From positions 1 to 59,028 of the forward strand of contig NIVC01004126.1 of NCBI GenBank assembly GCA_002269645.1: a stretch of 59,028 bases of DNA. The letters are read 5' to 3'. The translations under genes were made by a program, and so were the position numbers. Origin of the DNA: Macrostomum lignano (Eukaryota). The notes under the pieces were generated by a model. It saw only the letters and a list, made by a program, of their open reading frames with translations, ran no database searches and was not told the origin of the DNA. Numbering within the stretch: the stretch's first letter is position 1; each line of letters opens with the position of its first letter. Below, piece after piece: positions 4,510-47,200 of this stretch.

Positions 4510-7500
4510 ATGGGCAGCAGCTCTGGCGCACCGGAAGGACTCAGCTCGCCCGTGAAGCGGTTCTGCGGCTACACCACCGCCCACGGGCTGGGCCGCTTCT
4601 CCGAGCAGTCCAACCTCATCGGCAGGGTGATCTGGGTCTCCTTCCTGCTCGCCACCTACAGCGGCTTTGCCTACCACCTGTCCACCCTGTTCGAGAGGTT
4701 TCTGCAGGCTCCGGTGCTCACTAAAATGACCGTGTCCACTCTACAGTTCGAGTTCCCGGATGTGTACATCTGCCCAACTAACGCCGTTACCATGAGCAGG
4801 ATTTTTAAAAAGCTGCCCCAAAACGAGGTCACCTTTGGCGAGTTCTTCTTAAAGAAAAGCGTCGAGGAAAAAATCGGAATTTACTCGTTTGATCTCTCCA
4901 GCGGACGGTACGATTTGGAGCTGAACGACATGACGAAGGCTTTGCTGAGCGTTCTGCACAGCATGGAGGAGATCATAATGTCTTACTTTCAGTTTTTCGA
5001 TATCGGTGAGTCCTCCTGACTGCTGTGAAGACAGCGCGCACTGTGCAGTCTGGACGAGTTGCTCTTCAAACCATTGCCCTGAACCCAATCCTAAAACGCA
5101 ATTTCATTTCTTCAGCCGACGCAGCCAAGTGTCGAAGAACGCCCTCTGGAGAAGAGTACTCCGGGAATGTGAGCTCAGCAGTTGTCTACGGATTCACCAC
5201 TATGACTGTGACGTCCATCAACACTTCGGCGTTCACGCCCAGTCCGTACAGAGGCGTCAAGCAGTGCATGAGGTGGAACGATGCAGCTCAAAAACTGCTG
5301 AGCCTCGGCGAAAGTGGCCTGGCTAACAGACTGCTGGCGCTGAACTTTTCAGACAGCGAGTCCCGGTGCCGCTCGCCGCCTGGGCTGCCTCTGTCTGAGT
5401 TCTTTCCTATCGCTAGCCGTGAGTTTCCATCTGTTTGTCCGATTTGTTTGTCTCGATCAGGTCACACGGATGGAGATTTCCGGTCCTGCCAACACCACAG
5501 GCTCGGTGTTTCGGCACGCCGGCTGCCTTCCCCTTGCGCTGACCAACTCGAGTTCGTTCAACTTCACCTGCTACCGGGGCGGCTTGAGCTCGCTCGAAAC
5601 CTGCGCTGAATGCTGCGGCAGGCGCAGCTTCCAGTACATGGCGATCAGCCGCCAGGACTGCTTCTGCGGGAGCAGCATTGGCGGCTACGAGAACAGCAGC
5701 AGCGTGTGCAACGCCTCCTGCCTCCACGACAATTCGGCAATCTGTGGATCGGAAACTGCCGTCACTGTTCTGCAGATTCGGGACAACGGTAGGTGGGATA
5801 GTCGGAGAGCGGGTTAGAGATTGGTTGCTACTCAAAAGTAGCTCAATAAAACCGATAAGTTGACGACCTGGGACAGATTTTTTATGGTCACTTGTATATT
5901 GCTGGCAAAATCAGGTCATTCTGCAGACTCGTAACTCGCAGCTCAAGGCACGCATTCCACTTTGTAGGCAGCAGGCCGTTGCACGTCGCAAACTTCAGCG
6001 ACCTGGACGCAATCTCCAGCGGGCCCTACTGCTTTTTCGCGGATGAGCTGAGCGACAAGCTGAACGCTGCATTCTGCGAAATTCCCTACTGCCGTGAGTT
6101 TCCAACATGTTGCCTGACTTTTCCTTTCAAAGACGACTTCGATTCGTGAATGAAATACTTGACGTTCCATCGCTCAATCCAGAAATTTCGAGAACCTACG
6201 ACTGCATCGTGAGCTCCGAGGACAAGCTGACTCAGCAGCAAAGGCTGTCGCGCTACACCGGACGTCGGAACGTCACCAGCACTGGCCGGCGGTGCATGCC
6301 CTGGAGTCAGCTGTCCACAATTGAGCAAGTTCTCAAGGCGCGCCGCGGTAAGAGCTTCGATTGCATTGCTCACCTGTGCCGCTGGCAAATTTAATTTCGC
6401 CTGACCGAACCAGTCAAATTCCAATTTAGGTTCGGAAGTTGGCTTCATGGACGAAGTGCGGGAAATGCTTATCCAGACTCCGGACAGGCTTGAAGGCGAG
6501 AGCGACAATTACTGCCGTCCAGTTAGCGTTGTGGTCGATTCTGTCAACATCCACGGGCCCAAGGACTTCCAGTAAGCTTCGTATTGCATCGCAAGTAGCG
6601 TATGTGTGCTTGTTGCAGCGCTCCAAAATCTTTCCTATTATTTTTAGGCGGTTTAGCGCCATCGATTCGGAGGTTCCTGTGTGCATTCCGGAAGATTTCT
6701 GGGCCAACATTCCGTCCATTACGATAAAATTTGGCTACCTGTTTAACATGATCTTTCAGACCTGTAACGTGCCACTCTGTTGTGAGTTGCGCAAGTGACA
6801 ATTGAGCTGGATCTGTTTCTCGGTTATTATTTATTATTATATTCTAGGCATTGTTTTCAGTGCATTCTGTACCGAATGAATTTCTTTAGACACCGAGGTC
6901 CCCAGCGTGACAGCCACAATCAGAGACTCCGTCGGTGAGCACCTGCTGGCCCGACAGTTCGGCAGCGACCTCAACGCCGGCCTCACCGAGTGCAGCTTCG
7001 CTGGCCAGAAGTGCACCAAGGACGACTTTTTGAACGTCGCCCACCCGCAGCTGGGCATGTGCCACAAGTTTCTCAAGCAGCGCTTCACCGCCAACATGAC
7101 CAGCACGCAGTTGGCGGAGAGCCAGCTGTCCATCAAGTACTTCACGGACTCGACAGACTCCAAGGGTCAGACGGTGTCCAACATCGACAAGCTGACGCGG
7201 GTAGTGCGAGACAGCCGCGGCTCCGATGCGACTCAGGTCGCATTCAAGGTGAGTCTTCGTCGGTCGCTGAGCGTCTCAGTGTCTCACGCAATCTCTGAGC
7301 CTGGCTGCTCAACCGCGAACCCGCAGGCGGTCATCGTCCCGGATAGCTCGTTCCCGTGGGCCTCGAACGGCGTCAATGTGGCCACCGCTCAGCGCATGGA
7401 CGTGCATCTTAGATTCGACAAGTACTCCAGACTGTCCACCTCATCGAGGCCTTGCCTTGAGACTACGGAGCCGATCACCTACCGACTGCCGTCATGGAAG

Positions 7501-8723
7501 CTGTTTACGTCAAATGAGGACTCTGGGTAAAGAAAGCAAAAAGTTTTATTTCCTTATCTTTAGTCTGCAATATTGTAAATATCAAAGCTGTTTAAAACTA
7601 AAAATTTGCTTCCAGCGTCAACTCGGATGCGCAGGAAATTATGCGATCTTCCAACTGGACGCTGAAGCTGTCTATGTTGCGCAACGCGCTGCTTAAACTG
7701 AACGGCTCAAGGTAAGATTTTGCATAAAACCCTCCTTTTTCGCGCTTCTCTGCTTCTGGGAATTTCAGCATGTCAAATCGAATTTTGCAATAATTTTAAT
7801 CTCCATGACTTCAGCGCACTGACAGTCTCGGGTAGTCAGTTCAAAGTCTCGGACAGAGAGAACTGCGTCAACACTTATGTTGTCGAAAAATTCACCAACA
7901 CCTGCCGATGCCTGCCGGGGATGCTGCCCATTCAAGAAGAGCGGTTCAAAAAGCTCAGCTACTGCTTCGACATGTACTCAAGGGGAAACATTTCGGCCAA
8001 CACTGAGAAGTGCTACATTGAGCAGTTGTCGAAGATCACGCAGTACCATTTTGAAGCCATGAACGAATGCAAGTCGCCCTGCAGCAAGACCGACTTCAGC
8101 ACCCGCTACATCACCTACCCGTGGCCGAACTTGCTCTCGGTGCAGTCTCTCGACTTTCTGAAGAAGTTGGCCTCCGACTTTGGCTATCGACACGATATCA
8201 GCTTGATGAGAGGCGCCTCAAGCATCTACTACCTTTACCTTAAGGCTCAGAACCTCTCGGACACTCCCGTCATCAACCGGAGCACCGAGGCAATTCAGAG
8301 CTTCGAAAGCGAGCTGGCGGCGTTGCAGAACCGCCTGGCTCAGCTGACGGTCCAGGCCTGGCAGTCCCGTGGCCACGAAGTCTCAGAGGAGGAGGCCTAC
8401 CCAGCCAAGAACCTGGTGGCCGACATCGGGGGTAAGTGGTCCAGGTTGATCATGCTCAACAGGTGTATCAGTATTGAAAAACCGTTAATACAAAATGAAT
8501 TTCAGGAGCTCTGGGTCTCTGGTCCGGCATCTCAATCCTAACTATCTGCGAGCTGCTGGAGCTCTTCATCTACCTGGGACAGGCGCTGGCTGCCAGAGTG
8601 CAGGCGCAGTCCCGGATGCAGTCAAAAAACGCCGACGGTCAGCCCGAAGAGTCGGCCAGGCCGGAGTCAGAGATGGTCGCGCTCGATACGGACGCAGTAA
8701 GGCATAATAATGCTCAAGTCTGA
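4510..8723 (+). CDS. DEG/ENaC channel subunit with kringle-WSC-kringle insertion (paralog 1, ~1047 aa)
   Basis: Phase-consistent GT-AG exons: 4510-5005, 5116-5418, 5501-5788, 5968-6093, 6183-6347, 6430-6571, 6648-6781, 6890-7248, 7327-7526, 7616-7711, 7815-8431, 8506-8723. Motifs: TTAHG (HG motif), TM1, FPDVYIC, CSFAGQKC..DF..HPQLGMCHKF, Cys-rich thumb, EEEAY..LVADIGGALGLWSGISILTICELLELF (TM2). Confidence 0.92.
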
Positions 8724-10170: not shown

Positions 10171-10929
10171 CTGGCCCGCATGTCTATCTTACAGGATGCT
10201 TACAGGTTTTTAGTGGCTCTCCCTACCCCTGTGTCCCAGGCGATGGATGCCCCGCCCAAGAGGTGACAAAATTTGAGCTCCTGTCGTAGAACTTGGTTGC
10301 CTCTTTCATTTAGTTCTTGGAAGCGGGAAATTTATGTAGGGGGCCGATGGGGGCCCTCTGCGTACACGCTGGACCCTCACTGGAGTTTTGCCCCACTATT
10401 TCATGGATTTTTGTGTGCCTTCCGTGTTCCATTCAGATTCAGGTGCAGCAAAGAGTGGCCAGCAGTTAAGATTGGCCCCCTTTTCTACAAAGCACTCGTA
10501 AGCAACTTGATAATTTTACTGTTAACTTTGAGCAACTCAACTAACCCCAGATTTTATGCACTCACCAAACCAGATTCAAAACTTTTATGAATGCACGTGT
10601 TATTATTTTTACTGCTACATGTAAGTGCAGCAGCACAGCATGCTCTCAGCTACTTGCACAACTGTTCTCTACACAATCGTCTCTCTTGATATTTCTTCGC
10701 GTACAACGCTTACCGTCTTATGCCTATTTTCACTTTAATAAAGCCTCTGAACGTCTTTAAAACAAATCTTAAAGTCGTCAAGTCACCCTATTTTGGTGCA
10801 AAGCACGGCTGCATCGTAAATCAAGTCTTGTCTGGCTACTTTATGCAATTAGTAAAATAAATAATGCAGGCACACATGAGCCTATGCGGTGGAAAGCTAT
10901 GACCAAGAACTGCTCAAGTAGGAGGATGA

Positions 10930-17812: not shown

Positions 17813-19017
17813 ATGTCTACCATGTCTAACATGTCAAAAATGTCTACCATGTCTAACATGTCTACCATGTCTAAAATGTCTAACATGTCTACCATGTCTA
17901 CCATGTCTACCATGTCTAACATGTCTACCATGTCTAACATGTCTACCATGTCTAACATGTCTACCATGTCTAACATGTCAAAAATGTCTACCATGTCTAA
18001 CATGTCTACCATGTCTAACATGTCAAAAATGTCTACCATGTCTAACATGTCTACCATGTCTAAAATGTCTAACATGTCTACCATGTCTACCATGTCTACC
18101 ATGTCTAACATGTCTACCATGTCTAACATGTCTACCATGTCTAACATGTGTACCATGTCTACCATATCTACCATGTCTAACATGTCTACCATGTCTAACA
18201 TGTCTAACATGTCTACCATGTCTACCATGTCTACCATGTCTAACATGTCTACCATGTCTAACATGTGTACCATGTCTACCATGTCTACCATGTCTAACAT
18301 GTCTACCATGTCTAACATGTCTACCATGTCTAACATGTCTACCATGTCTAACATGTCTACCATGTCTAACATGTGTACCATGTCTACCATATCTAACATG
18401 TCTACCATGTCTACCATGTCTACCATGTCTAACATGTCTACCATGTCTAACATGTGTACCATGTCTGCCATGTCTACCATGTCTAACATGTCTACCATGT
18501 CTAACATGTGTACCATGTCTGCCATGTCTACCATGTCTAACATGATGTCTACCATGTCTACCATGTCTACCATGTCTAACATGTCTACCATGTCTAACAT
18601 GTCTACCATGTCTAACATGTCTACCATGTCTAACATGTCTACCATGTCTAACATGTCTACCATGTCTAACATGTCTACCATGTCTAACATGTGTACCATG
18701 TCTACCATATCTAACATGTCTACCATGTCTACCATGTCTACCATGTCTAACATGTCTACCATGTCTAACATGTGTACCATGTCTGCCATGTCTACCATGT
18801 CTAACATGTCTACCATGTCTAACATGTGTACCATGTCTGCCATGTCTACCATGTCTAACATGTCTACCATGTCTAACATGTCTACCATGTCTAACATGTG
18901 TACCATGTTCTAACATGTCTACCATGTCTAACATGTCTACCATGTCTAACATGTCTACCATGTCCACCATGTCTACCATGTCTAACATGTCTACCATGTC
19001 TAACATGTCTACCATGT
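17812..19017. repeat. 9-bp microsatellite (catgtctac/catgtctaa)n, ~1.2 kb
   Basis: Produces the MST/MSN and MLD/MVD pseudo-ORFs. Confidence 0.97.
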
Positions 19018-22222: not shown

Positions 22223-25200
22223 TTACATTCTGGAATTGGACTCCAACTCAACCTGGACAGAATCCTGACTCACAGCCGACTGTATCATCTCCGAGCACCC
22301 AGCAACAGATGAGGCCACGGTTGGGACACTGCCGGTATTGGTGCAATTGTTGTTGAAGTTGTTGTTGGCGCCAGGGCCGCCGTTGTTCCGGTTGCGGGGC
22401 GCAGCGACTCTGTGGAATTTGTAGCCGATGGCCAGGCCGATGTAGATGAGCAGCTCGAGCAGCTCGCAAACTGTCAGAATGGAAATTCCCGACCAAAGAC
22501 CCAAGGCACCTGCAATTTTAGGCATGAGATGCGAAAGCTGACATTCCTGGGAGACTTGGGATCCAGGGTCACTGAGTACAGAACCTGCTCATTGTCACCT
22601 CCAATGTCGGCCACGAGGTTCTTGGCCGGGTAGGCCTCCTCCTCCAAGATCTCCTGGCCGAATGACGTCCAGGCCTGAACCGTCAGCTGAGCCAGTCGGT
22701 TCTGCAGCACCGTCAGCTCGTTTTGAAAGCTCAGGATTTCTGTCGCGCTCCGATTGCTGACAGGAATGGCCGAATCCCTCAGGGATCTCAGGTAGATGCT
22801 GTAGATGCTGTTCAGGCCCCTCAGGCCGCTGGGGTTGCTGCCGTATCCAAACGCGGTGGCCAGGGTTTTCAGAAACGAGAACGACTGCAGACCGTTCAGG
22901 TTCGGCCACGGATAGGTGATGTGGCGGACGCTGTACTCGGCTGTACGGCAGGGAGACTGGCACAGCCGGACCGCAGCAAACTGGTACTCCAGCACCTTCG
23001 ACTTCTGCTCTCTGTAGCACATGTCCGTTTCTATGGACACGTTTCCAGCGGCTTGAAAATCAAAACAGTAGGTGTAATTCGAAAAGTACTCCACCGGAAT
23101 CGGCAGGAACGACGGCAGGCAGTGGCATTCCGCGATGAACTTCTTCACAACGTGTCTGTTGATGCAGTCGTCTCGGTCAGTCAGCTTGAATTCTGAGTCG
23201 AATTCCGACAGCGAACTGCAAATTTGGGAAATGCGTGGAACTTTTGCAAACCTGGCAGTCACACTCGCACAAGCTAAAGCCTATGGTCCATACCTCAATG
23301 CACCTTGCTTCTGCTTTCGAAGCTGCACTTCCATTGCGGCAACTTTCAGCCACCAATCAGTCACCATGAAAACCGCATTTAAGTCGAAACTGTAGCTGTA
23401 AAGGGAATCATTGATCAGTCAGTGCGCAGTCTTCACGGCGATAAAATATTTCTGCATGAAGACTCACTCCGGGTTCTCATTAAATGGAGCCGACTTCCAT
23501 GACGGCAGTCGGTAGGTGATTGGCTCCGTAGTCTCAAGGCAAGGCCTCGATGAGGTGGACAGTCTGGAGTACTTGTCGAACCTCAGCTGCACATCCATGC
23601 GCTGAGCGGTGGCCACATCGATTCCCTTCGAGGCCCACGGGAACGAGCTATCCGGGACGATGACCGCCTGCGGGTTCGCGGTTGAGCAGCCAAGCTCAGA
23701 GATTGCGTGAGACATTGAGACGCTCAGCGACCGACGAAGACTCACCTTGAATGCGACCTGAGTCGCATCGGAGCCGCGGCTGTCTCGCACTACCCGCGTC
23801 AGCTTGTCGATGTTGGACACCGTCTGACCCTTGGAGTCTGTCGAGTCCGTGAAGTACTTGATGGACAGCTGGCTCTCCGCCAACTGCGTGCTGGTCATGT
23901 TGGCGGTGAAGCGCTGCTTGAGAAACTTGTGGCACATGCCCAGCTGCGGGTGGGCGACGTTCACAAAGTCGTCCTTGGTGCACTTCTGGCCAGCGAAGCT
24001 GCAGTCGGCGAGGCCGGCGTTGAGGTCGCTGCCGAACTGTCGGGCCAGCAGGTGGCTGCCGACTGAGTCTCTGACGGCGCCCGTCACGCTGGGGACCGTG
24101 GCATCTGTTAAATGTTATGTGAATGCGGGATCAGGAAAGATATTTTTAATGAGAATTTCCTACTATCAATCGGTTGTTCAACAAAGGGCTCTAAAGACCC
24201 TGAAAAAGCGACTTACAACACAGCGGGATCTCGCAGGGCTCAAAGTCAGCATCAAAGAGACCGCCCCAGCCCATGATGTCCGGGATGCAGCCCGGCACAT
24301 CAGACATTTCTTGTGCGAAGCGACTGAAGTTATGTTTTTATAAATTGAAGCAGAGGCTGAGTTAAACATATTTAAAGTTTTATGCAGCAGAAGTCAAAGA
24401 AAGAATTCGATATAGGAAGATTTTCTTACGAAGCCTCGTGCGTACTAAAGTACGAGCCGTGGTCGATAACGATCTGCGCCGATCGGCAGAAATTGTCGCT
24501 GCTGTTGGGATTGAAGTCCGGAGTCTGAATGTGAAATCCGAACTGCTTGTGGTAACCTGTGAGTAGTCGGCGTTTGCAAGTCATGGATATGAATATGAAC
24601 TCGGGCATTTTATCGCATTCTGTGCATGCAGCGGTCGCATAGTTACCCATTCTTATGTACGTATCCTCTTGTATCTTCTCCAGCTTACTCCACGGCACGC
24701 ACGGCTTCCCAGTGATTGTGTAGTTTTTCCTACCGGTGTACCGGGCCCGAGTCAGCCGCTCAAGGGTCTTGTTCTCAGAGCTCACGATGCAGTCGTAAGC
24801 ACCTGACATCGCTGAAAAAGTGTAGCATTCGTGCGGTGTAACCGAGGAGACAATCCTCGGTATGGCAAACTCACTCACGGCAGAAGGGCACATCGCAGAA
24901 CGCAGCGCCCAGCCTGTCTCGCTCATCAGTGAAGAAGCAGTAGGGCCCGTGCGAGAAGACTGTGAGGTTGCTGAAGTTTCCCACCTGCAGCGGCCTCGGC
25001 TCTGCAAGCGGATTGAGCCTCGGCTAGAGTTATAGAGGCTTCTGCTGACGAGAATTCAAGAGACTCACCTGTGTCTCCGATCTGCAGCACCGTGATGGCG
25101 GTTGCTGACCCGCAGTGCTGCTGATCGTTGCTGGCGCAGCGACTGCTGCAGACGCCGCTGTCATTGCCGGAGCTTGGGGGACTCGCTCCGCACAGGCAGC

Positions 25201-26354
25201 TGTCAACTTGCAGCGCGATGTGGCTGAAGTCGAGCGAAGCGCAACAGTGAGCGCAGGTCTCGTGAGTCACAATGCCTTCCGTGTCGCAGGTGTAGTTGAA
25301 TTCATGGTCGGTGAAGTTCGCCTCAAAGCAACCAACAAGCCGCAGCGTGGGGCCTGTAATTCCAGGTTCGGTTGGAATGTCGAATAAAGCCGAATAAAGC
25401 TTGCAAAACAATCTCTTGACTCACGATTCGCGATGGGGAAAAAATCGGACAGCGGGAGCCCTGGCGGGGAGCGACAGCGAGACTCGCTGTCGGAGAAGTT
25501 CAGCGCCAGCAGTCGGTCAGCGAGGCTGTGTGTTAAACTGGTGTTCACACTTCTCAGCCTCTGAGCCGCATCGTTCCATTGCATGCACTGCCTGTACGTC
25601 CTGAATGGCGGCAGCACGCCAGAAATGTTCGAAGCCGTGACTCGCATCTTCGTCCGATCGTAGACAACCGCAACACTGGCGTTGCCCGAGTAATCCTCAC
25701 CGGAGAGCGTGGTCCTGCACTCCACTCTGCCTGAGAAGTTCGTTGCACAGTGGGAATCACTGAACTACTCATAAAATACTGAGAAAGATGAACTTGTAGA
25801 TGCAGATATATTAGGAACTCACTGCTCTTGGGAAACTGCAGCTCGGCCATGAGCGACCTCTCGGCACTCTGCAGCACATTCATCAGAGCTTGCGCCGGCT
25901 TGTTCTGCGCAGCGTAGTTCCCAGACTCCAAGTCGAACTCATAGAAGTGTATCTTGAAATCGATCTGGACTGTCCTGTCATTCTCTCTCCAGTTGATTAG
26001 GCCTATCGGCATCTGCTCAATGGCCCTGCTCAGTGTGACGGCTTGTGCGGGACAGATGTACACATCCGGGAACTCGTACGACAGCGTGGACATTGTCATG
26101 GTGGTGAGCACCGGGGCGGTGAGGAACCTGCCGAACAGGGTGTACAGGTGGTAGACGAAGCCGCTGTAGGTGCCGAGCAGGAAGGCCAGCCAGATCATCC
26201 TGCCGAGCAGGCTGGACTGGTGAGCGAAGCGACCGAGTCCGTGCGCGGTGGTGTAGTCCAGGAAGCTGGCCACGAACTGGCGCAGATTCCTGTCGCTGCG
26301 TGAGGAGTCGGCAACGACAGCGTTGCCGCTCGGCGTCTGAGCTGCTGCGCTCAT
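22223..26354 (-). CDS. DEG/ENaC channel subunit with kringle-WSC-kringle insertion (paralog 2, ~1069 aa)
   Basis: Phase-consistent exons: 26354-25823, 25730-25425, 25353-25069, 25001-24879, 24811-24647, 24556-24430, 24323-24217, 24104-23746, 23667-23468, 23395-23294, 23215-22599, 22509-22223. Same intron phases and motifs as paralog 1 (TTAHG, FPDVYIC, LVADIGGALGLWSGISILTVCELLEL). Confidence 0.92.
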
Positions 26355-26984
26355 TTCAGCTCAAGGCAGTCAGTGACTTTCAGGCGTCCGTCTGTCTCAC
26401 GGGTCAGCGCCGCGCAAAAACATGGGGCAGGTTTTCCCAGACAAATGCTGTTGTTTTCAACCTCTTTGCCGGGCCGCTCAGCATGCAGGTAATTGGCCAA
26501 AGTGGATTGTTTTCCAGCAACATCGCCCACCCAGCGGAGGCTGGGATGCCGCAACCTTTGGCTCAGGCAGATAAGGCGAGAGATGCATGCAATTACAATA
26601 AATTTTGCACGGCCAGTCACCTGGCTGCACGCTGGGCTGACTGGAGGCTTGTGCTCAGGCCGGCTCAAAGCATTGGGCCCGGCCTCGCAGTGGTGGAGGG
26701 GCAGAGAAGCTGGCGGCGTTTGAGCTGTCGGCCAGCCGTTTAACTGCCAAAGTCAATCAGTTTTAGGGCTGAGACCCGCAGCAGCTCAATGTGCAAAAAA
26801 TAATTGCAAATCAATAGTCTGCAGGTGCTGTAAAAATAGACATTTCAATTTTTACAGTCACGAAGCAAAAATTGATTTCGGTAACAGTAATTGTTGCAAT
26901 GCTGGGCTGAACATTTCAACACCAATTTCAGAAATGCTTTTTGAGCTGCTTGCTGCTTAATGAGCAGGAACCAAAGCACACTGA

Positions 26985-28062
26985 AGCTGCTGATCAAACG
27001 GGAATCAAGACAGCAGGTGTCACACTGCAGCTGCTGATCAAACGGGAATCAAGGCAGCAGGTGTCACACTGCAGCTGCTGATCAAACGGGAATCAAGGCA
27101 GCAGGTGTCACACTGCAGCTTCTGATCAAACGGGAATCAAGACAGCAGGTGTCACACTACAGCTGCTGATCAAACGGGAATCAAGGCAGCAGGTGTCACA
27201 CTGCAGCTGCTGATCAAACGGGAATCAAGACAGCAGGTGTCACACTGCAGCTGCTGATCAAACGGGAATCAAGACAGCAGGTGTCACACTGCAGCTGCTG
27301 ATCAAACGGGAATCAAGACAGCAGGTGTCACACTGCAGCTGCTGATCAAACGGGAATCAAGACAGCAGGTGTCACACTGCAGCTGCTGATCAAACGGGAA
27401 TCAAGGCAGCTGGTGTCACACTGCAGCTGCTGATCAAACGGGAATCAAGACAGCAGGTGTCACACTGCAGCTGCTGATCAAACGGGAATCAAGGCAGCAG
27501 GTGTCACACTGCAGCTGCTGATCAAACGGGAATCAAGGCAGCAGGTGTCACACTGCAGCTGCTGATCAAACGGGAATCAAGGCAGCAGGTGCCACACTGC
27601 AGCTGCTGATCAAACGGGAATCAAGGCAGCAGGTGCCACACTGCAGCTGCTGATCAAACGGGAATCAAGGCAGCAGGTGTCACACTGCAGCTGCTGATCA
27701 AACGGGAATCAAGACAGCAGGTGTCACACTGCAGCTGCTGATCAAACGGGAATCAAGACAGCAGGTGTCACACTGCAGCTGCTGATCAAACGGGAATCAA
27801 GGCAGCAGGTGTCACACTGCAGCTGCTGATCAAACGGGAATCAAGGCAGCAGGTGTCACACTGCAGCTGCTGATCAAACGGGAATCAAGGCAGCAGGTGT
27901 CACACTGCAGCTGCTGATCAAACGGGAATCAAGGCAGCAGGTGTCACACTGCAGCTGCTGATCAAACGGGAATCAAGGCAGCAGGTGTCACACTGCAGCT
28001 GCTGATCAAACGGGAATCAAGGCAGCAGGTGTCACACTGCAGCTGCTGATCAAACGGGAATC
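26985..28062. repeat. 44-bp tandem array (gctgctgatcaaacgggaatcaaggcagcaggtgtcacactgca)
   Basis: ~24 near-perfect units. Confidence 0.97.
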
Positions 28063-28426
28063 ATCTATCAGCAGTGAATGTAGATGATCTAGCGATGACT
28101 TTTTCATGGGGAAATTTATTATCTCTTTTCTGTAGGCGCTCATACATTGTAGGTGTTTGAATTGACACACCTGCAACAGAAAGGGCTTGCTAATTTACAT
28201 ATGAGTGGTTCAATAAATATCAGGATGTGCCTTGAATTCGTGTATTTGCGGGGAGCCGCTAGGCTACTCTGCAGTGTTGACAGAAGTTGCCAGTCCAAAT
28301 CTCATTCGAGGGCCTTTCAAGGGAATTTTGAGGGCCTTGCCGCCATCCTACAAACACATGCAGTTTGTAATGTACTTCGTAGAAAATGTAAGATGCTAAT
28401 TAGTGGACATACCCCCCGCAAGGGGA

Positions 28427-29211: not shown

Positions 29212-31450
29212 ATGCAGCTCAATCAGCTTATCGCATGTTTGATCATCCTTTCTGCAGCCATTCGTAAGTTTCTCCCTTATCAGCTCGATTCGATTCTAAT
29301 ATTCCAGGTTCGTCGAACCACTCATGGTAGCTCGTACTCGTTGAACCTGGCGAAACTGCAGACAGAGCAGCGTCCTTGGAATGCCTGGTTGCCGTGGACT
29401 TCAGCCAGCAAAACTACTCGGAGCCCTGCGCCTCCTTCCACACCGGCTGCTTCGAGAGAATCCAGCTGGCCAGCGATGAGAGGACTCTCGTGAGGCTGTA
29501 CTGCGACTTCGCCTGTGCGGGACACCTGCCTCTCTGACCCTTCAGTCCCTACCTCTCTGACCCTCCAGTCCCTGCCTCTCTGACCCTCCAGTCCCTGCCT
29601 CTCTGACCCTCCAGTCCCTGCCTCGCTGACCCTCCAGTCCCTGCCTCTTTTTACCCTCCAGTCCCTGCCTCTTTTTACCCTCCAGTCCCTGCCTCTCTGA
29701 CCCTCCAGTCCCTGCCTCTTTTTACCCTCCAGTCCCTGCCTCTCTGACCCTCCAGTCCCTGCCTCTTTTTACCCTCCAGTCCCTGCCTCTTTTTACCCTC
29801 CAGTCCCTGCCTCTCTGACCCTCCAGTCCCTGTCTCTTTTTACCATCCAGTCCCTGCCTCTTTTTACCCTCCAGTCCCTGCCTCTTTTTACCCTCCAGTC
29901 CCTGCCTCTCTGACCCTCCAGTCCCTGTCTCTTTTTACCATCCAGTCCCTGCCTCTTTTTACCCTCCAGTCCCTGCCTCTTTTTACCCTCCAGTCCCTGC
30001 CTCTTTTTACCCTCCAGTCCCTGCCTCTCTGACCCTCCAGTCCCTGCCTCTTTTTACCCTCCAGTCCCTGCCTCTCTGACCCTCCAGTCCCTGCCTCTTT
30101 TTACCCTCCAGTCCCTGCCTCTCTGACCCTCCAGTCCCTGCCTCTTTTTACCCTCCAGTCCCTGCCTCTCTGACCCTCCAGTCCCTGCCTCTTTTTACCC
30201 TCCGGTCCCTGGCTAGTTTAGAACAAAAACTAGCTGACGAATTCATGACTCGTGCAGTTCTGGCTCATAAAAGCCAGCCCCAGAGACACAGAGAGTGTAC
30301 ATACCTGGAGCCAGCCCCAGAGACACAGAGAGTGTACATACCTGGCAACGAGAAAGTCAGGACCGCTGTACACCCTGTCTGAGCTGTGCGTGCATGAGAG
30401 TATTTATCCATGCGCGCCCACCCCCGTGCAAACTGATGACTGATTAACCTCTGCCGCAGGTTTACGAAGCGCACTGCGCCAAAGGCGACGAGTGCAAGCA
30501 GGACCCGTCGAACTGCCTGGTCTGCAGCGGTGCAGACAGGTGCAACACGGGCTTGTTGAAGCGAGTCGAGCAGAAGCACAGCCAGTGCTACAGCTACAGC
30601 GGAGATGTCAGGCAGATCTTCTATGGCGACAAGAAGGAGTACGTGCCGCAGGTGAAGGAGGAGCCCGCCTACTGCGGTGCCGGCATCAACAGCTGCCATC
30701 GAATTGAGCTCACCGAACCGGATCCCAACTTCGCGACTGGCTACTCTGTGAGGCACGGCCCAGCCATTCTTGAAACTTCGGAACTCTAAAAGGGACATTC
30801 CCAAATCCTCCTGAACCCCGCAGGACATCCCAAATCCTCCTGAGCCCCGCAGGACATCCCAAATCCTGAGCCCCGCAGGACATCCCAAATCCTGAGCCCC
30901 GCAGGACATCCCAAATCCTCCTGAACCCCGGAGGACATCCCAAATCCTCCTGAACCCCGCAGGACATCCCAAATCCTCCTGAGCCCCGCAGGACATCCCA
31001 AATCCTCCTGAACCCCGCAGGACATCCCAAATCCTCCTGAGCCCCGCAGGACACCCGCCAATCCTCCTGAGCCCCGCAGGACACCCCCAATCCTCCTGAG
31101 CCCCGCAGGACACCCCCAATCCTCCTGAGCCCCGCAGGACACCCCCAATCCTCCTGAGCCCCGCAGGACACCCCCAATCCTCCTGAGCCCCGCAGGACAC
31201 CCCTAACAAAGTCAGCCTGATGGCAGGCTGCGGCAAATTTGACTGCCGGACTCTGCAGTTCGTGTCGGGCTGCCTGATCTGCGTGGGCCAGCTGTGCAAC
31301 AGCCTGCAGGCCAACGAAATCCCGGTCGGGTTCCAGTCCGATCAGGCCAGCGGAGTCGCGCCTGTGGCCTGTGGACTGTCCGAGTCGCTGCTGCTGCTGG
31401 CCGCTGCCGCTCTCGCTGCAGTGCAGGGCCGGCAGCAGCTCGGAGACTGA
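29212..31450 (+). CDS. Secreted, putatively GPI-anchored Ly6/uPAR (three-finger) protein with two LU domains (~240 aa)
   Basis: Exons 29212-29263, 29362-29489, 30460-30747, 31196-31450. Signal peptide MQLNQLIACLIILSAAI; domain 1 LEC..C..C..C..C..CLVCSGADRCN; domain 2 QCY..C..C..GCGKFDC..CLICVGQLCN; hydrophobic C-terminal tail SLLLLAAAALAAV. Confidence 0.8.
29528..30210. repeat. 23-24-bp pyrimidine-rich array (ccctccagtccctgcctctctga / ..ctcttttta) in LU-gene intron 2
   Basis: Visible. Confidence 0.95.
30270..30420 (+). mobile_element. Diverged SINE family A fragment
   Basis: gtgtacatacct..aaagtcaggaccgctgtacaccctg..tatccatgcgcg resembles ~12440-12525. Confidence 0.5.
30790..31203. repeat. 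~29-bp array (aatcctcctgagccccgcaggacaccccc) ending at the LU-gene exon 4 acceptor
   Basis: The last unit supplies the in-frame ccccgcag|gac acceptor. Confidence 0.9.
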
Positions 31451-32449: not shown

Positions 32450-34375
32450 AGCACCCAAAACACAATCCAAAACACCCAATCACAAAACACGCAACCCCAA
32501 AACACAAACCTTAAAACACAAACCTTAAAACACACCACCCCAAAACACAAACCTTAAAGCACAAACCTTAAAACACACCACCCCAAAATACAAACCTTAA
32601 AACACACCACCCCAAAACACAAACCTTAAAGCACAAACCTTAAAACACACCACCCCAAAATACAAACCTTAAAACACACCACCCCAAAACACAAACCTTA
32701 AAGCACAAACCTTAAAACACACCACCCCAAAATACAAACCTTAAAACACACCACCCCAAAACACAAACCTTAAAACACAAACCTTAAAACACACCACCCC
32801 AAAATACAAACCTTAAAACACACCACCCCAAAACACAAACCTTAAAACACACCACCCCAAAACACAAACCTTAAAACACACCACCCCAAAACACAAACCT
32901 TAAAACACAAACCTTAAAACACAAACCCCAAAATACAAACCTTAAAACACACCACCCTAAAATACAAAACTTAAAACACACAACCCCAAAACACAAACCG
33001 TAAAACACACCACCCCAAAACACAAACCTTAAAACACACCACCCCAAAATACAAACCTTAAAACACACCACCCCAAAATACAAACTTTAAAACACACCAC
33101 CCCAAAATACAAACCTTAAAACACACCACCCCAAAACACAAACCTTAAAACACACCACCCCAAAACACAAACCTTAAAACACACCACCCTAAAATACAAA
33201 CCTTAAAACACACCACCCCAAAACACAAACCTTAAAACACACCACCCCAAAATACAAACCTTAAAACACACCACCCCAAAATACAAACCTTAAAACACAC
33301 CACCCTAAAATACAAACCTTAAAACACACCACCCCAAAACACAAACCTTAAAACACACAACCCCAAAACACAAACCTTAAAACACACCACCCCAAAATAC
33401 AAACCTTAAAACACACAACCCCAAAACACAAACCTTAAAACACACAACCCCAAAACACAAACCTTAAAACACACAACCCCAAAATACAAACCTTAAAACA
33501 CACAACCCCAAAACACAAACCTTAAAACACACCACCCCAAAATACAAACCTTAAAACACACCACCCCAAAATACAAACCTTAAAACACACCACCCCAAAA
33601 CACAAAACTTAAAACACACCACCCCAAAATACAAACCTTAAAACACACCACCCCAAAATACAAACCTTAAAACACACCACCCTAAAATACAAACCTTAAA
33701 ACACACAACCCCAAAACACAAACCTTAAAACACACCACCCCAAAACACAAACCTTAAAACACACCACCCCAAAATACAAACCTTAAAACACACCACCCCA
33801 AAATACAAACCTTAAAACACACCACCCCAAAACACAAACCTTAAAACACACCACCCCAAAATACAAACCTTAAAACACACCACCCCAAAATACAAACCTT
33901 AAAACACACCACCCTAAAATACAAACCTTAAAACACACAACCCCAAAACACAAACCTTAAAACACACAACCCCAAAACACAAACCTTAAAACACACCACC
34001 CCAAAATACAAACCTTAAAACACACAACCCCAAAATACAAACCTTAAAACACACCACCCCAAAATACAAACCTTAAAACACACAACCCCAAAATACAAAC
34101 CTTAAAACACACAACCCCAAAACACAAACCTTAAAACACACAACCCCAAAATACAAACCTTAAAACACACAACCCCAAAACACAAACCTTAAAACACACC
34201 ACCCCAAAACACAAACCTTAAAACAAACAACCCCAAAACACAAACCTTAAAACACACAACCCCAAAATACAAACCTTAAAACACACAACCCCAAAACACA
34301 AACCTTAAAACACACACCCCCAAAATACAAACCTTAAAACACACCACCCAAAACACAAACCTTAAAACACACCAA
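32450..34375. repeat. ~29-bp A/C-rich satellite (aaaacacaccaccccaaaatacaaacctt), ~1.9 kb
   Basis: Almost G-free on the + strand. Confidence 0.97.
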
Positions 34376-41200: not shown

Positions 41201-44200
41201 GGTCTTTGTTCTGAACCGCACACGCAAGCATCTCAGCCAGCTGCTGGTCTTTGTTCTGAACCGCACACGCAAGCATCTCAGCCAGCTGCTGGTCTTTGTT
41301 CTGAACCGCACACGCAAGCATCTCAGCCAGCTGCTGGTCTTTGTTCTGAACCGCACACGCAAGCATCTCAGCCAGCTGCTAGTCTTTGTTCTGAACCGCA
41401 CACGCAAGCAGAACAGCTCATGCGGACACAGGGCAGACAAACTGCCATCAGTTCGCGCACATACTCGTACATGACTGGAACACTTTATGTAACAAGCAAA
41501 GGATTTTCCATATAAATGAAAAGTAGGAAAGCAGGACAAATAATTACACAGAGTAATAAAATAACCGGTGAGAGGCGCAGAAAAGTTCAAACCGTGAGTC
41601 AGTTAAACTTGACACAAATAAAAAAACAGCAAAAGTACAAATGCACGGGTGCGCTCTCTAAACACGCGGAAATCTCGGGCTCGCAGCTTCCAACACGGGA
41701 AAATCATGCTTGTCAAAACTGGAGAAGCTCGCCAGTTTTGCTGCACACTCACGTGGGGGTCTATCCTGTTCTGCCGGGGTCGCTTGGTCTCCTCCTCAAG
41801 CGCCTTCTCCCACATCGAGCTGATGCGGGAGCCCTTTAGCAAGCGATAGCGATTTAGGAATTAAGGGCATTTTCAACACGTGTCAGGTCTGGAGACTGTC
41901 AGTCAAGTTCTAGAGACTGCCAGCCCAGGTCTAAAGACTGTCAGTCCAGGTCTAGAGACTGCCAGTCCAGGTCTAGAGACTGTCAGTCCAGATCTAGAGA
42001 CTGCCAGTCCAGGTCTAGAGACTGCCAGTCCAGGTCTAGAGACTGTCAGTCCAGATCTAGAGACTGACAGTCCCGGTCTAGAGACTGCCAGTCCAGGTCT
42101 AGAGACTGCCAGCCCAGGTCTAGAGACTGTCAGTCCCGGTCTAGAGACTGCCAGTCCAGGTCTAGAGACTGCCAGTCCAGGTCTAGAGACTGTCAGTCCA
42201 GATCTAGAGACCAGAGAAAGATCCAGAGAATGGCAGTGCATATCTGAAGTCTAGTCATATGAATGTGGAGTTTAAAACAGTAAATGAAGTTACCAACACA
42301 GAGCAGAGAATCCAAAGTAGCAAGATACTGCAGTGCTTATAGGCCATAAATATCGGGTGTCTGTCAGGATAAACACCCAGTGCCCGAGTGACAGGATCTC
42401 TGTGACAGAGTGACAGGATCTCTGTGACAGAGTGACAGGATCTCTGTGACAGAGTGACAGGATCTCTGTGACAGAGTGACAGGATCTCTGTGACAGAGTG
42501 ACAGGATCTCTGTGACAGAGTGACAGGATCATCTCTGACAGAGTGACAGGACAAAGAGCCAGGATGGGATAAGGAAGGCACAACAATGCGAATGATCAAC
42601 CTGGAATTGCGCAGCCGCAGCCGCCTGCGACTCCCGGCGGCGCCAGAGGTCAAGCAGGCTGCGGGCGGCGCTGACCTGCGGCAGGCCGTCCAGGCAGCTG
42701 CTGGCTGCTGGCGCAGATTCCCGCTCAGCTTCATCGCTGGCTGACGACTCCGAGGCGCAATTTCGCTAATTTGCGATTTTAGTTCGGGAGATCAGAGAGC
42801 GGCACGGATGATGCTGGAGTCTGGACCGGGACTTTCATAAAATCAAATTTTTACTAGTCGGAAAATGGAAGCGCCAAGTAGTCTGGCGCGGCGCTCTGAT
42901 GTGCCAGCGGCCCCGAGCTCCATTCCAAGTGCACTCACATGAATTTGGGGCTAAACTGGAATCTCAGCTTGGCTCTGCTCGTGCAATTAACGGCCTTGAG
43001 GCCCAACCCCCAAGGCACAGTGAAGTGTACATGCCTGCTCAGTGCAATCAGTGGGAGACCACGGGGAGACGGCGGGTCTGATAAGCCGGAAACCATTTTC
43101 TGACTAAGCTGAAATCCCCTCTAAAGCGCAGAACAGGCCAGAACGCTCAGTCGACCGCTTTGCATAAAAAATAAGGCCAAACTTATTAGCAAACAGGACA
43201 TACTACTGAGATGAAGTGATTAACGAGTAGTATTATTTGAATTTAAGGAAAATCTTTTGAATTTGCTGACTCTCAGAGAGCGATCGGGTTTTCATTGAGC
43301 AACACACTACTTACCGATTCTTCACCTCAGTAGTAATACCTATGGCCTTTTATTTTAGCTTCAGATATAAGACAGCCGATTTGAGCATTCTGGCGCATTC
43401 TGCGCTGCTGACAGCTCACAAATTCAGTTAAAACTGAGGGCGGCACTCACAGATCGCGGCCGGGCCTCCGCCTCCTTGGCAGGCGGCTGGTGGCTGCCGT
43501 TCTGCTGCTCGATCTCCCGGAAGCGGGCCAGCACGTTGCGGCTGCTGCCGGGTGCCGGCCGGTCGTCCGAGTCGCCGTTGTCATAGCAACGGACTACATC
43601 TGGTGGCAACTCCTGCGGCTGGCTTTCGACCACTCCGGCGCTGCCCTCCCTGGGCGGGGTGAAGCGCTTTGGCTTCTCCGAGTGCGGCCGCTCCTTCTCG
43701 CTGGTGGCCGTCTCGTAGCGGTGTCTGGCAGACTGCAGGCCAGCGTAGTACACCTGGGCGGATCCAGGTGGGGAGCTGCGTGCGAACGCGATGCTTTGGG
43801 AGTCGGGATTTGATGGATTGGGATTCGGGATTTGATGGATTGGGATTCGGGATTTGATGGATTGGGATTCGGGATTTGATGAACTGGGATTCGGGATTTG
43901 ATGGATTGGGATTCGGGATTCGATAGATTGGGATTCGGGATTTGATGGATTGGGATTCGGGATTTGATGAACTGGGATTCGGGATTTGATGGATTGGGAT
44001 TCGGGATTTGATGGATTGGGATTCGGGATTTGATGGATTGGGATTCGGGATTTGATGAACTGGGATTCGGGATTTGATGGATTGGGATTCGGGATTCGAT
44101 AGATTGGGATTCGGGATTTGATGGATTGGGATTCGGGATTTGATGAACTGGGATTCGGGATTTGATGGATTGGGATTCGGGATTTGATGGATTGGGATTC

Positions 44201-47200
44201 GGGATTTGATGGATTGGGATTCGGGATTTGATGGATTGGGATTCAGGATTTGATGGATTGGGATTCGGGATTTGATGGATTGGGATTCGGGATTTGATGG
44301 ATTGGGATTCGGGATTCGATAGATTGGGATTCGGGATTTGATGGATTGGGATTCGGGATTTGATGAACTGGGATTCGGGATTTGATGGATTGGGATTCGG
44401 GATTCGATAGATTGGGATTCGGGATTTGATGGATTGGGATTCGGGATTCGACAGATTGGGATTCGGGATTTGATGAACTGGGATTCGGGATTTGATGGAT
44501 TGGGATTCAGGATTTGATGGATTGGGATTCGGGATTTGATGGATTGGGATTCGGGATTTGATGGATTGGGATTCGGGATTCGATAGATTGGGATTCGGGA
44601 TTTGATGGATTGGGATTCGGGATTCGACAGATTGGGATTCGGGATTTGATGAACTGGGATTCGGGATTTGATGGATTGGGATTCGGGATTTGATGGATTG
44701 GGATTCGGGATTCGATAGATTGGGATTCGGGATTTGATGAACTGGGATTCGGGATTTGATGGATTGGGATTCGGGATTTGATAGATTGGGATTCGGGATT
44801 TGATGGATTGGGATTCGGGATTCGACAGATTGGGATTCGGGATTTGATGAACTGGGATTCGGGATTTGATGGATTGGGATTCGGGATTTGATGGATTGGG
44901 ATTCGGGATTCGATAGATTGGGATTCGGGATTTGATGAACTGGGATTCGGGATTTGATGGATTGGGATTCGGGATTTGATAGATTGGGATTCTGGATTTG
45001 ATGGAGTGCGATTCGGGATTTGATGGATTGGGATTTAGGATTAGGTTTGGGATTCGGGATTTGATGAACTGGGATTCGGGATTTGATGGAGTGCGATTCG
45101 GGATTTTATGGATTGGAATTTAGGATTAGGTTTGGGATTCGAACTGGAATTTGGGATTTGGAGAATTGGGACTCGGGATTGAAAAGTGTTTTGAGTCGGA
45201 CACCAGTGAAATAACCAGTGAAAAAGTAAATAAACTAAAATATTAAAGCTTTGATCGCCTCTTGCCAGCTGAGTGACTCATCCGACCGTGAAGCATGCGA
45301 AGGTGAACAGGACCAGGTGAACCAATTATTAATGCCGAATGACGAGTGCTGAACCGATCCACGAATCAAAAGAAAGGAAGTCTAAGGAAAGCAGATCGCC
45401 GTTAAAAAGGTACCCCAGATGATGCAGGAGGCTGCGCAGTCTCCATCTCTTCGGCCTCGTCAGGGGCGGCAGAGTCGCCCTCGTCGTAGTCGGAGGGAAA
45501 GTTCGGAGCGCAGGACAGCTCGGCTGTCAGCTTCGGGTGCCGAGTGTTGCCGCTGGATGCCGGCATTGGTTGCCTAGCAACTGCAGGCTGCATAGCAACC
45601 TCCGGAGAAGACAGCGTAGCAACCACTGGAGATGGTTGCGTAGCAGCCACAAATGGTTGCATAGCAACAGCATTCGAGGGCGGAGAAACCGAAGGCGGTT
45701 GAAAGGACAAAAATTGCTGCCTAGCAACTGGCAGCAGAGAAGTCACCGATGATTGCCTAGCAACCGGCGTCTCCTTAGCAACCGGCTGTTGCGTAGCAAC
45801 CAATGGATCAGCATTAGCATCGATCGGGGACTGTAATCCGGAAACAGACGACTGCCTAGCGACCATTCTTAGCTGAACGGTTGCCTTGGAAACCTTTGAT
45901 GATGCCGCCGGCTCGGCAAGCTGGATAGAATATTTTCCAGACCAATTTAACTGGCCATTTCCCTTTGCACGTAGCTGGGTGCTGCGACTGGGTAGCAATT
46001 AGAACTGCTGCTAACTTAATGCTCACTTGCTTCAAGCTTTAGCAATCAAGACTGATAATGCCTTAGTTAATACATTCTGCTAGTGCTTGCAGCAGCAAAA
46101 CTTAATGCAAAACTCAGATCTCAGAATCTGCGAAGGTTGCGACGGCCCAGCAACTGAGCAACTGAGTTACTCTGGGAGGGAAGCGAAGTAACTGGGGATC
46201 TGGGAGGCTAGCCCAGCAACTAAGGATCTGGGCGGCTGGCCCAGCAACTGAGGATCTGGGAGGCTGGCCCAGCAACTGAGGATCTGGGAGGCTGGCCCAG
46301 CAACTGAGGATCTGTGAGGCTGGCCCAGCAACTGAGGATCTGGGAGGCTGGCCCAGCAACTGAGGATCTGGGAGGCTAGCCCAGCAACTAAGGATCTGGG
46401 CGGCTGGCCCAGCAACTGAGGATCTGGGAGGCTGGCCCAGCAACTGAGGATCTGGGAGGCTGGCCCAGCAACTGAGGATCTGTGAGGCTGGCCCAGCAAC
46501 TGAGGATCTGGGAGGCTGGCCCAGCAACTGAGGATCTGGGAGGCTGGCCCAGCAACTGAGGATCTGGGAGGGCAGCGGAGCAACTGAGCATCTGGGAGGC
46601 TGGCCTAGCAACTGAGAATCTGGGCGGCTGGCTCAGCAACTGAGGATCTGGGAGGGCAGCGGAGCAACTGAGGATCTGGGAGGCTGGCCAGCAACTGAGA
46701 ATCTGGGTGGCTGGCCCAGCAACTGAGCATCTGGGAGGCTGGCCCAGCAACTGAGAATCTGGGCGGCTGGCTCAGCAATTGAGGATCTGGGAGGGCAGCG
46801 GAACAACTGAGAATCTGGGAGGCTGGCCCAGCAACTGAGAATCTGGGCGGCTGGCTCAGCAACTGAGGATCTGGGAGGCTGGCTCAGCAACTGAGGATCG
46901 AGGAAGGCAGCGGAGCAACTGAGGATCTGGGAGGCTGGCCCAGCAACTGAGAATCTGGGTGGCTGGCCCAGCAACTGAGGATCTGGGAGGCTGGCCCAGC
47001 AACTGAGAATCTGGGTGGCTGGCCCAGCAACTGAGAATCTGGGAGGCTGGCCCAGCAACTGAGAATCTGGGTGGCTGGCCCAGCAACTGAGGATCTGGGA
47101 GGCTGGCCCAGCAACTGAGAATCTGGGTGGCTGGCCCGGCAACTGAGGATCTGGGAGGCTGGCCCAGCAACTGAGAATCTGGGAACTGCTCGCCAATGCA

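Follow-up and report, generated by a model that had tools for sequence, protein, structure and literature searches.

A WSC exon set between the halves of a probable kringle-like module in a DEG/ENaC channel subfamily of Macrostomum lignano

Introduction

Can a small, disulfide-knotted module take up a whole second domain in one of its loops and retain it as a fixed part of a protein? The question is raised by a 59-kb contig of the free-living flatworm Macrostomum lignano (NIVC01004126.1, assembly GCA_002269645.1; the window in what follows is this whole stretch of 59,028 nucleotides), in which positions 5116-6093 comprise exons 2-4 of a 12-exon gene of the DEG/ENaC channel family, BOX15_Mlig006056g1, hereafter gene 1. 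The first-pass annotation of the window had read these exons as a kringle (K1) into which a WSC domain had been dropped by exon shuffling, and had further proposed that skipping of the WSC exon might restore the kringle and thus act as a splice switch. Our analysis supports the first of these proposals in a modified form and not the second. We consider it probable that a kringle-like module with six cysteines encloses the WSC domain between its two halves, that this domain got there by an old exon insertion into the loop between the third and fourth cysteines (Cys3-Cys4), and that the arrangement is a permanent one. Below we present the evidence for the identity of the inserted domain, the conservation of the exon layout and the nature of the flanking halves, before turning to the channel that carries them, its possible function and its closest counterparts among known systems.

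A complete WSC domain on a single symmetric exon

Taken alone, the product of exon 3 matches the Pfam WSC family (PF01822) with 33.0 bits against a cut-off of 27.8. In the full-length gene 1 protein the match scores 26.4 bits, slightly under that cut-off, and spans residues 274-349, which lie wholly inside the part encoded by exon 3 (residues 267-362); the precomputed Pfam annotation of the deposited protein of this gene (P0001) also includes PF01822. We constructed a profile of K1 together with its WSC domain (K1+WSC) from seven paralog sequences and used it in a HMMER scan of 1.84 billion representatives (E <= 0.001). This recovered 3790 proteins, in which the best stretch consistently falls at about positions 105-195 of the profile, namely exon 3. 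A profile of the WSC part only scores 43-53 bits on single WSC domains from unrelated proteins; as for where the exon came from, the comparison with this profile singles out no WSC domain as the nearest.

Structural comparisons point the same way. A phmmer search aligns P0001 with yeast Wsc1 (7pz2, E 1.6e-4), and the best PDB matches that Foldseek returns for an AlphaFold model of K1+WSC are Kremen1 (5FWT, E 5.4e-4 over 178 aligned columns) and, again, yeast Wsc1 (7PZ2, E 3.9e-3). The model as a whole has a predicted local distance difference test score (pLDDT) of 64 and a predicted template modeling score (pTM) of 0.53, with the WSC part reaching a pLDDT of only about 50-80. At the sequence level, five of the six paralogs have 10 cysteines in the WSC exon and the sixth (P0006) has 11, where at least eight conserved ones are expected of a WSC domain. 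The former five also possess a CG[GS] motif (ICGSE, HCGSA, ACGGD, TCGGD and PCGSD), in place of which P0006 reads KCDCD; a CGG-type motif has been described for WSC domains (PMC9024836). We conclude that exon 3 encodes a true WSC domain of the PAN/Apple type. It is at the same time the fastest-evolving part of the K1 region, gene 1 and its paralog in the window (gene 2) being 39% identical here at the amino-acid level, compared with 67% over exon 2 and 61% over exon 4.

Conservation of the three-exon layout

The first-pass annotation had placed Cys1-3 of K1 on exon 2 and Cys4-6 on exon 4, with a 288-nt phase 1-1 exon between them. Coordinates and cysteine contexts alike agree with our gene 1 model, which was built by hand as 12 exons on the plus strand (4510-8723) and whose spliced product is 100% identical to P0001 over 99% of its length: exon 2 holds its cysteines in the contexts KC, QCMRW and SRCRSP, and the entire Pfam WSC match sits inside 5501-5788. 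The equal split that had been read in the inverted paralog likewise holds. In gene 2, exons 2, 3 and 4 measure 306, 285 and 123 nt and are all phase 1-1, with HGPYCFF..AFCDVPFC on the last of them. The two genes share about 54% amino-acid identity, as estimated via P0003, a near-copy of gene 2.

The layout extends well beyond this pair. Two deep paralogs on other contigs, P0005 (33% identity; on L001, where its 300-nt WSC exon occupies 4592-4891) and P0009 (32%; on L002), display the identical phase 1-1 triplet, and the intron positions around their WSC exons coincide in the alignment. The three-exon architecture is thus present at four independent loci. Since both the triplet and the intron positions recur in paralogs that are only 32-33% identical, the nested exon layout is beyond chance. 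The M. lignano subfamily comprises at least six distinct paralogs, and the WSC exon is present in every retrieved paralog that covers the region. Cysteine counts for exons 2, 3 and 4 are 3/10/3 in five of six paralogs and 3/11/3 in P0006, the six flanking cysteines being invariant in all the paralog sequences that cover them. The linker after Cys3 (PPGLPLSEFFPI) is among the best-conserved parts, with P88, L91, P92, L93 and F96 (segment numbering) invariant. Hence, the placement of the WSC exon within the module is older than the diversification of this channel family.

The flanking halves as a kringle-like module

What, then, is the module that the WSC exon interrupts? A kringle is a domain of about 80 residues with disulfides 1-6, 2-4 and 3-5, each of which joins one of the first three cysteines to one of the last three. 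The cysteine contexts of K1, C..SGEEY.GN, QCMRW, NFS...RCR.P, GPYCFF and AFC.[IV]P.C, have in common with kringles the motifs G..Y.G, C..W, N[YF]..CR.P, GP[YW]C and C.[IV]P.C, which cover all six cysteines. As a reference for profile comparisons we used the sequences of plasminogen kringles 1-5, confirmed by exact match against PDB 4A5T and then aligned. Against these, K1 without the WSC part attains an hhalign score of 31.0 (E 5.5e-5), where the column-shuffled null is 11.4 ± 2.6 with a maximum of 24.3 and none of 200 shuffles reaches 31.0. The sister module K2, encoded by exons 5-7 and free of a WSC domain, scores 28.9 over 70 columns (E 1.3e-4; null about 11 ± 2.5, again reached by none of 200 shuffles), so that both modules stand 7-8 standard deviations above their column-shuffled nulls. 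In a greedy alignment of K1 to plasminogen kringles 1-5, Cys2-Cys6 are in register, Cys1 is off by one residue, and the site of the WSC insertion maps to the loop between Cys3 and Cys4.

The similarity is also visible in the separate halves. The N-terminal half (exon 2) scores 19.3 against the plasminogen kringles, on the motif pair GEEYSGN~GKNYRGT, and the exon 4 half yields PDB profile matches to the kringles of plasminogen, neurotrypsin and ROR2. Further, K1 and K2 align with each other from Cys2 to Cys6 (E 5.4e-5), and the N-terminal half of K1 alone scores 26.9 against K2, a value reached by none of 100 shuffles. In Pfam searches Kringle (PF00051) is the sole family found for K1 without the WSC part (14.7 bits, E 0.04, two of six paralogs matched) and the top family for K2 (six of seven paralogs matched, the best with E 2.6e-4; 14.1 bits for the gene 1 module). 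In a PDB profile search with K2, nearly all of the 60 matches listed are kringles, aligned in three pieces in the correct order, the best among them being tPA kringle 2 (E 9.5e-4).

K2 is nonetheless no textbook kringle, in that its Cys2-Cys3 and Cys3-Cys4 loops are far longer than those of a kringle. Its introns, one of phase 1 between Cys2 and Cys3 and one of phase 2 between Cys3 and Cys4, are not common to K1. Its AlphaFold model (pLDDT 72.6, pTM 0.66) comprises a long helix and three long strands, with a three-stranded sheet formed from the enlarged loops.

A number of findings weigh against our interpretation and are best considered together. The strict alignment of K1 to the plasminogen kringles spans the C-terminal 21 columns only; the Pfam Kringle match in the window's own protein scores 14-15 bits against a cut-off of 34.3, with every scanned paralog below the cut-off; and the Cys1-Cys6 span is 138 residues in K1 without the WSC part and 140 in K2, as against about 80 in a kringle. 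Residues 1-46 of the K1+WSC model stay under a pLDDT of 50, and a helix is predicted for the part between Cys2 and Cys3, at odds with known kringles. Foldseek with the K2 model attains a best E of 0.39 in the PDB, with no kringle among the 50 matches listed, and hence the structure predictions give no support for a kringle identity of K2. Moreover, the comparative evidence is from paralogs of one species throughout, and the function that we propose below is drawn from analogy.

Several of these points would fit an alternative in which the flanks are not derived from a kringle at all. They would instead be a cysteine-rich scaffold peculiar to the lineage, or else a pair of small and separate modules, whose motifs merely look like those of a kringle. 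The sub-threshold Pfam scores, the length of about 140 residues from Cys1 to Cys6, the helices and long strands of the models, which are foreign to kringles, and the K2 Foldseek result all lean in that direction, as do the top PDB profile matches of K1 without the WSC part, which are to talin and which we judged spurious. We nevertheless regard this alternative as unlikely. Kringle is the family that Pfam returns for either module, the K2 matches are kringles in correctly ordered pieces, the hhalign scores far exceed their nulls, and the six cysteines all occur in the expected kringle motif contexts. The contrary models, for their part, were built on 7-sequence alignments and are only moderately confident, and a Foldseek search with the K1+WSC model is unable to pick out a domain that is discontinuous. 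Were the alternative to hold, 'WSC nested in a kringle' would be a misnomer, and the WSC domain would still lie between two cysteine-bearing pieces. On balance, the sequence comparisons make it quite likely that the K1 and K2 flanks are kringle-like modules of kringle descent, which fall below the formal thresholds for a kringle.

Nesting as a probably permanent arrangement

If the kringle-like reading of the flanks is adopted, the cysteine counts bear directly on whether the two halves form one unit. Each half has three cysteines, an odd number, and the WSC exon has an even one (10 in five of six paralogs); thus, full oxidation would oblige each half to form one or more disulfides with a partner outside itself. 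The 3 + 3 split is what the kringle pairs 1-6, 2-4 and 3-5 predict, and the counts of 3/10/3 are consistent with these predicted pairs without proving them. In the K1+WSC model, the exon 4 stretch with Cys4 and Cys5 (segment 211-240) has block-mean pLDDT values of 57-72, in contrast to those under 50 at residues 1-46, which suggests that this stretch packs against something. The geometry of the guest domain would also be suitable: with the strand order beta1-beta5-beta3-beta4-beta2 (PMC9024836), the first and last strands of a WSC domain adjoin in the sheet, and hence its ends are expected to lie close together, as an inserted domain requires. Of the earlier proposal that exon shuffling dropped a WSC domain into the C3-C4 loop of a kringle, the symmetric exon and the insertion point in that loop are retained; the recipient has to be described as kringle-like, with its flanks under the Pfam cut-off.

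The more dynamic possibility, that exon 3 is a cassette exon whose regulated skipping yields a channel with a K1 uninterrupted by WSC, has some features in its favor. The exon is symmetric in both genes, its omission joins exons 2 and 4 in frame with no stop (the gene 1 junction is ..PIAS-R-SRPL.. and that of gene 2 ..PIAN-Q-PRPL..), and it evolves fastest in the K1 region. However, exons 2, 4 and 5 are equally symmetric, and the phase symmetry is therefore a footprint of exon shuffling and not a mark of regulation. The splice sites are canonical: the two GT-AG introns around exon 3 in gene 1, of 82 and 179 nt, have consensus-like donors (gtgagt and gtaggt). They are also short, and with short introns splicing favors intron retention over exon skipping. 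The ten WSC cysteines and the flanking linker are kept down to 32% overall identity, and no retrieved protein model omits the WSC exon. Nor would skipping restore a normal kringle, as the first-pass annotation had supposed: of that claim the reading frame is borne out in both genes, whereas the Cys3-Cys4 loop left after skipping would number 37 residues, where plasminogen kringles have 11-12. When the sequence of the skipped junction was used as a database query, nothing was matched, not even the parent protein, and this search carries no weight in either direction. The splice switch finds no support, and we hold regulated skipping to be very unlikely.

That the WSC exon is an artefact of annotation or assembly, or part of a decaying pseudogene, and hence outside any functional transcript, can practically be discounted: faulty family models do exist in the database (P0003 with an intron read-through, P0008 and P0035 without exon 4), but both window genes have an open frame through 12 exons and canonical splice sites, the architecture recurs at the four loci, the cysteines are conserved, the channel motifs are intact, and a crude ratio of non-synonymous to synonymous substitution rates (dN/dS) between gene 1 and gene 2 is below 1, a value that is unreliable in itself as the synonymous sites are saturated.

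The host channel and the surrounding genes

The gene 1 protein is, judged by its sequence, a DEG/ENaC-type channel subunit. Its match to the Pfam ASC family (PF00858) scores 146.6 bits against a cut-off of 23.6 (E 1.5e-42, residues 575-995), and the motifs read from the model comprise two transmembrane (TM) segments, TTAHGLGR with the HG motif, FPDVYIC after TM1 and LWSGISILT with the G-x-S motif in TM2. The nearest solved structures are those of FMRFamide-gated channels (FaNaC; 7yvb, E 1.3e-14), followed by ASIC, PPK26 and ENaC, and both ends of the protein align to FaNaC, ASIC and ENaC structures. Specifically, residues 20-106 correspond to FaNaC 7yvb residues 73-160, and residues 572-600 to FaNaC residues 196-224; with the flanking parts so aligned, the variable finger region is seen to have gained residues 166-551 as an insertion specific to this lineage. 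The features of the two window genes are collected in Table 1.

Table 1. Coordinates of the DEG/ENaC gene features in the window
Feature	Position	Strand	Length and phase	Content	Basis
Gene 1, exon 1	4510..5005	+		N-terminus with HG motif GYTTAHGLGR, TM1, FPDVYIC, first finger helices	Own model, Pfam ASC, FaNaC alignment
Gene 1, exon 2	5116..5418	+	303 nt, phase 1-1	K1 N-terminal half, Cys1-3 = C171, C216, C250; conserved linker PPGLPLSEFFPI	
Gene 1, exon 3	5501..5788	+	288 nt, phase 1-1	Complete WSC domain, 10 cysteines, CG[GS] motif	
Gene 1, exon 4	5968..6093	+	126 nt, phase 1-1	K1 C-terminal half, Cys4-6 = C384, C399, C404 in GPYCFF..AFCEIPYC	
Gene 1, exons 5-7	6183-6347, 6430-6571, 6648-6781	+		Second kringle-like module K2, without WSC	
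Gene 1, exons 8-12	6890..8723	+		Remaining DEG/ENaC extracellular domain, TM2 (GALGLWSGISILTICELLEL); stop 8721-8723 in own model	Pfam ASC, structure alignment
Gene 2, inverted paralog	22223..26354	-	1069 aa	Layout as gene 1: exon 2 25730-25425, WSC exon 25353-25069, exon 4 25001-24879	

Several further observations concern these gene models. In gene 1, an AG at 5459-5460, 40 nt upstream of the WSC exon acceptor (tctcgatcag/GTCACA), is a possible cryptic acceptor, the use of which would give a 328-nt exon and shift the frame. At the 3' end, a simple read-through of gene 1 (about 8696-8723) terminates in ..DTDAVRHNNAQV at the stop, unlike the deposited P0001, whose C-terminus ..DTDAIQVQQRVASS is encoded near 10440-10466 and thus implies an additional 3' intron. 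The P0003 model of the gene 2 type apparently fuses upstream repeat-derived open reading frames (tblastn matches at 30439-31445) and reads through intron 2 (25424-25354, minus strand), adding 'HRESDCFRKLYSALFDIPTEPGITG'; both features look like annotation artefacts. Among the other M. lignano paralog models P0007, P0008 and P0035, one has a short exon 4 product (23 residues versus 41-42), and P0008 and P0035 are without exon 4, which would leave three cysteines unpaired; these peculiarities are either real variation or misprediction.

The two window genes, about 13.5 kb apart, also share a tract of 604 nt (6897-7500 on the plus strand versus 24097-23494 on the minus strand) that takes in exon 8, intron 8 and the greater part of exon 9, with 96% identity and an exon 8 synonymous rate (dS) of 0.05. 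Outside of this tract they are 71-81% identical, and it looks like the outcome of a recent gene conversion. The intergenic DNA is rich in minisatellites, with 52 Tandem Repeats Finder rows of periods 10-145 nt (for example, 965-1665, 17813-19017, 26977-28063, 32454-34374 and 43796-45141). The other long open reading frames of the window, most of which lie inside tandem repeats, have no significant Pfam match, GBP_repeat scoring 17.3 bits against a 25-bit cut-off.

Proposed assembly and function

Taken together, we advance the following scenario for the origin and role of this composite. Before the family diversified, a self-contained WSC exon of phase 1-1 was most likely inserted into K1 at a phase-1 intron, in the loop between Cys3 and Cys4. 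The finger region would thereby have come to hold about 390 cysteine-rich residues, made up of K1 with the WSC domain inside it and then K2. The disulfides C171-C404, C216-C384 and C250-C399 (P0001 numbering) would link the two halves of K1 to each other, around the base of the WSC domain. The composite module would sit atop each subunit, where related channels receive their stimuli and, by analogy with these, it would probably offer a surface, coupled to gating, at which a protein, a glycan or the matrix is bound or tethered. A bolder claim, which we deem quite improbable, is that the Macrostomum subfamily is a new functional class of DEG/ENaC channels, with the kringle-like/WSC finger composite acting as a glycan- or matrix-tethered mechanosensor or as a receptor for a protein ligand, and possibly with regulated inclusion of the WSC domain.

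Occurrence and comparison with known systems

As regards other proteins with a WSC domain inside a kringle, a search for which the first-pass annotation had suggested, the nested architecture was seen in M. lignano only within the reach of our scan. Among the 150 matches listed of the 3790, those over the whole K1+WSC profile are the M. lignano proteins P0002, P0003, P0005, P0006 and P0009 only; partial M. lignano models, P0035 and P0097, were also matched by this profile. These top 150 are dominated by multi-WSC proteins, and a kringle-like frame without a WSC domain would rank below them. A further database search with a K1-WSC-K2 profile returned P0002 only and was judged uninformative. In M. 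lignano itself, P0016 has 12 WSC matches. The mussel Mytilus galloprovincialis encodes a protein (P0037, XP_076108178.1) with seven WSC matches followed by a canonical C-terminal kringle at 554-624 (E 6e-25 with the plasminogen kringle profile); thus, the two domains co-occur, in tandem, in another spiralian. As for prior knowledge, the flatworm proteins were deposited as "WSC domain-containing" or hypothetical, and neither the kringle-like frame nor the nesting is described in any source that we found.

The closest known counterparts are Kremen1/2 (Kringle-WSC-CUB; PDB 5FWS/5FWT), which likewise pack a kringle-type module and a WSC domain in one extracellular unit; of the PDB structures, Kremen1 matches the K1+WSC model best. 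As the first-pass annotation rightly noted, the domains of Kremen are side by side and not nested (PMC5014086, PMC9024836), in contrast to the placement of WSC between Cys3 and Cys4 of the kringle-like module in the flatworm channels. The Kremen WSC domain is, moreover, split by a phase 0 intron (PMC3927609), whereas here it is on a single exon. Further, Kremen is a single-pass type I receptor with a CUB domain, while the host in this case is a two-TM ion channel in which Pfam detects no CUB domain. Yeast Wsc1 (PDB 7PZ2) shares with exon 3 the PAN/Apple core, the conserved disulfides and the CGG-type motif; it differs in being a single-pass fungal cell-wall stress sensor, as opposed to a domain of 10 cysteines embedded in another module.

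In terms of architecture, the apt comparison is with the gelatinases MMP-2 and MMP-9, in which fibronectin type II modules lie within the catalytic domain as a result of symmetric exons, in a permanent nesting. There too, a disulfide-rich mobile module has come to lie within a second folded domain. Guests and host differ, however: the flatworm WSC domain was received by a small disulfide-knotted module that is in turn inserted in a channel ectodomain, resulting in three nesting levels. If the nested fold is real, it would be a case of three-level nesting by symmetric exons, with a WSC domain in a kringle-type module in a channel ectodomain, and would imply that a small disulfide-knotted module can take up a whole domain in one loop.

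Finally, within the DEG/ENaC family, the variable finger region that houses the composite has received other lineage-specific additions, as in ENaC with its GRIP domain, C. elegans degenerins with their extra cysteine-rich region, and FaNaC. In those channels the finger region receives proteolytic or peptide input. Our literature search found no description of kringle or WSC modules in DEG/ENaC channels. Three M. lignano DEG/ENaCs near the FaNaC clade, not assigned to the subfamily described here, gave no peptide-evoked currents (PMC9234716). Against this backdrop, the flatworm-specific subfamily bears a large module of an adhesive or ligand-binding type at the very place where related channels get peptide, proteolytic or mechanical input, which makes its members candidates for gating by a novel stimulus, in a flatworm that lends itself to experiments.

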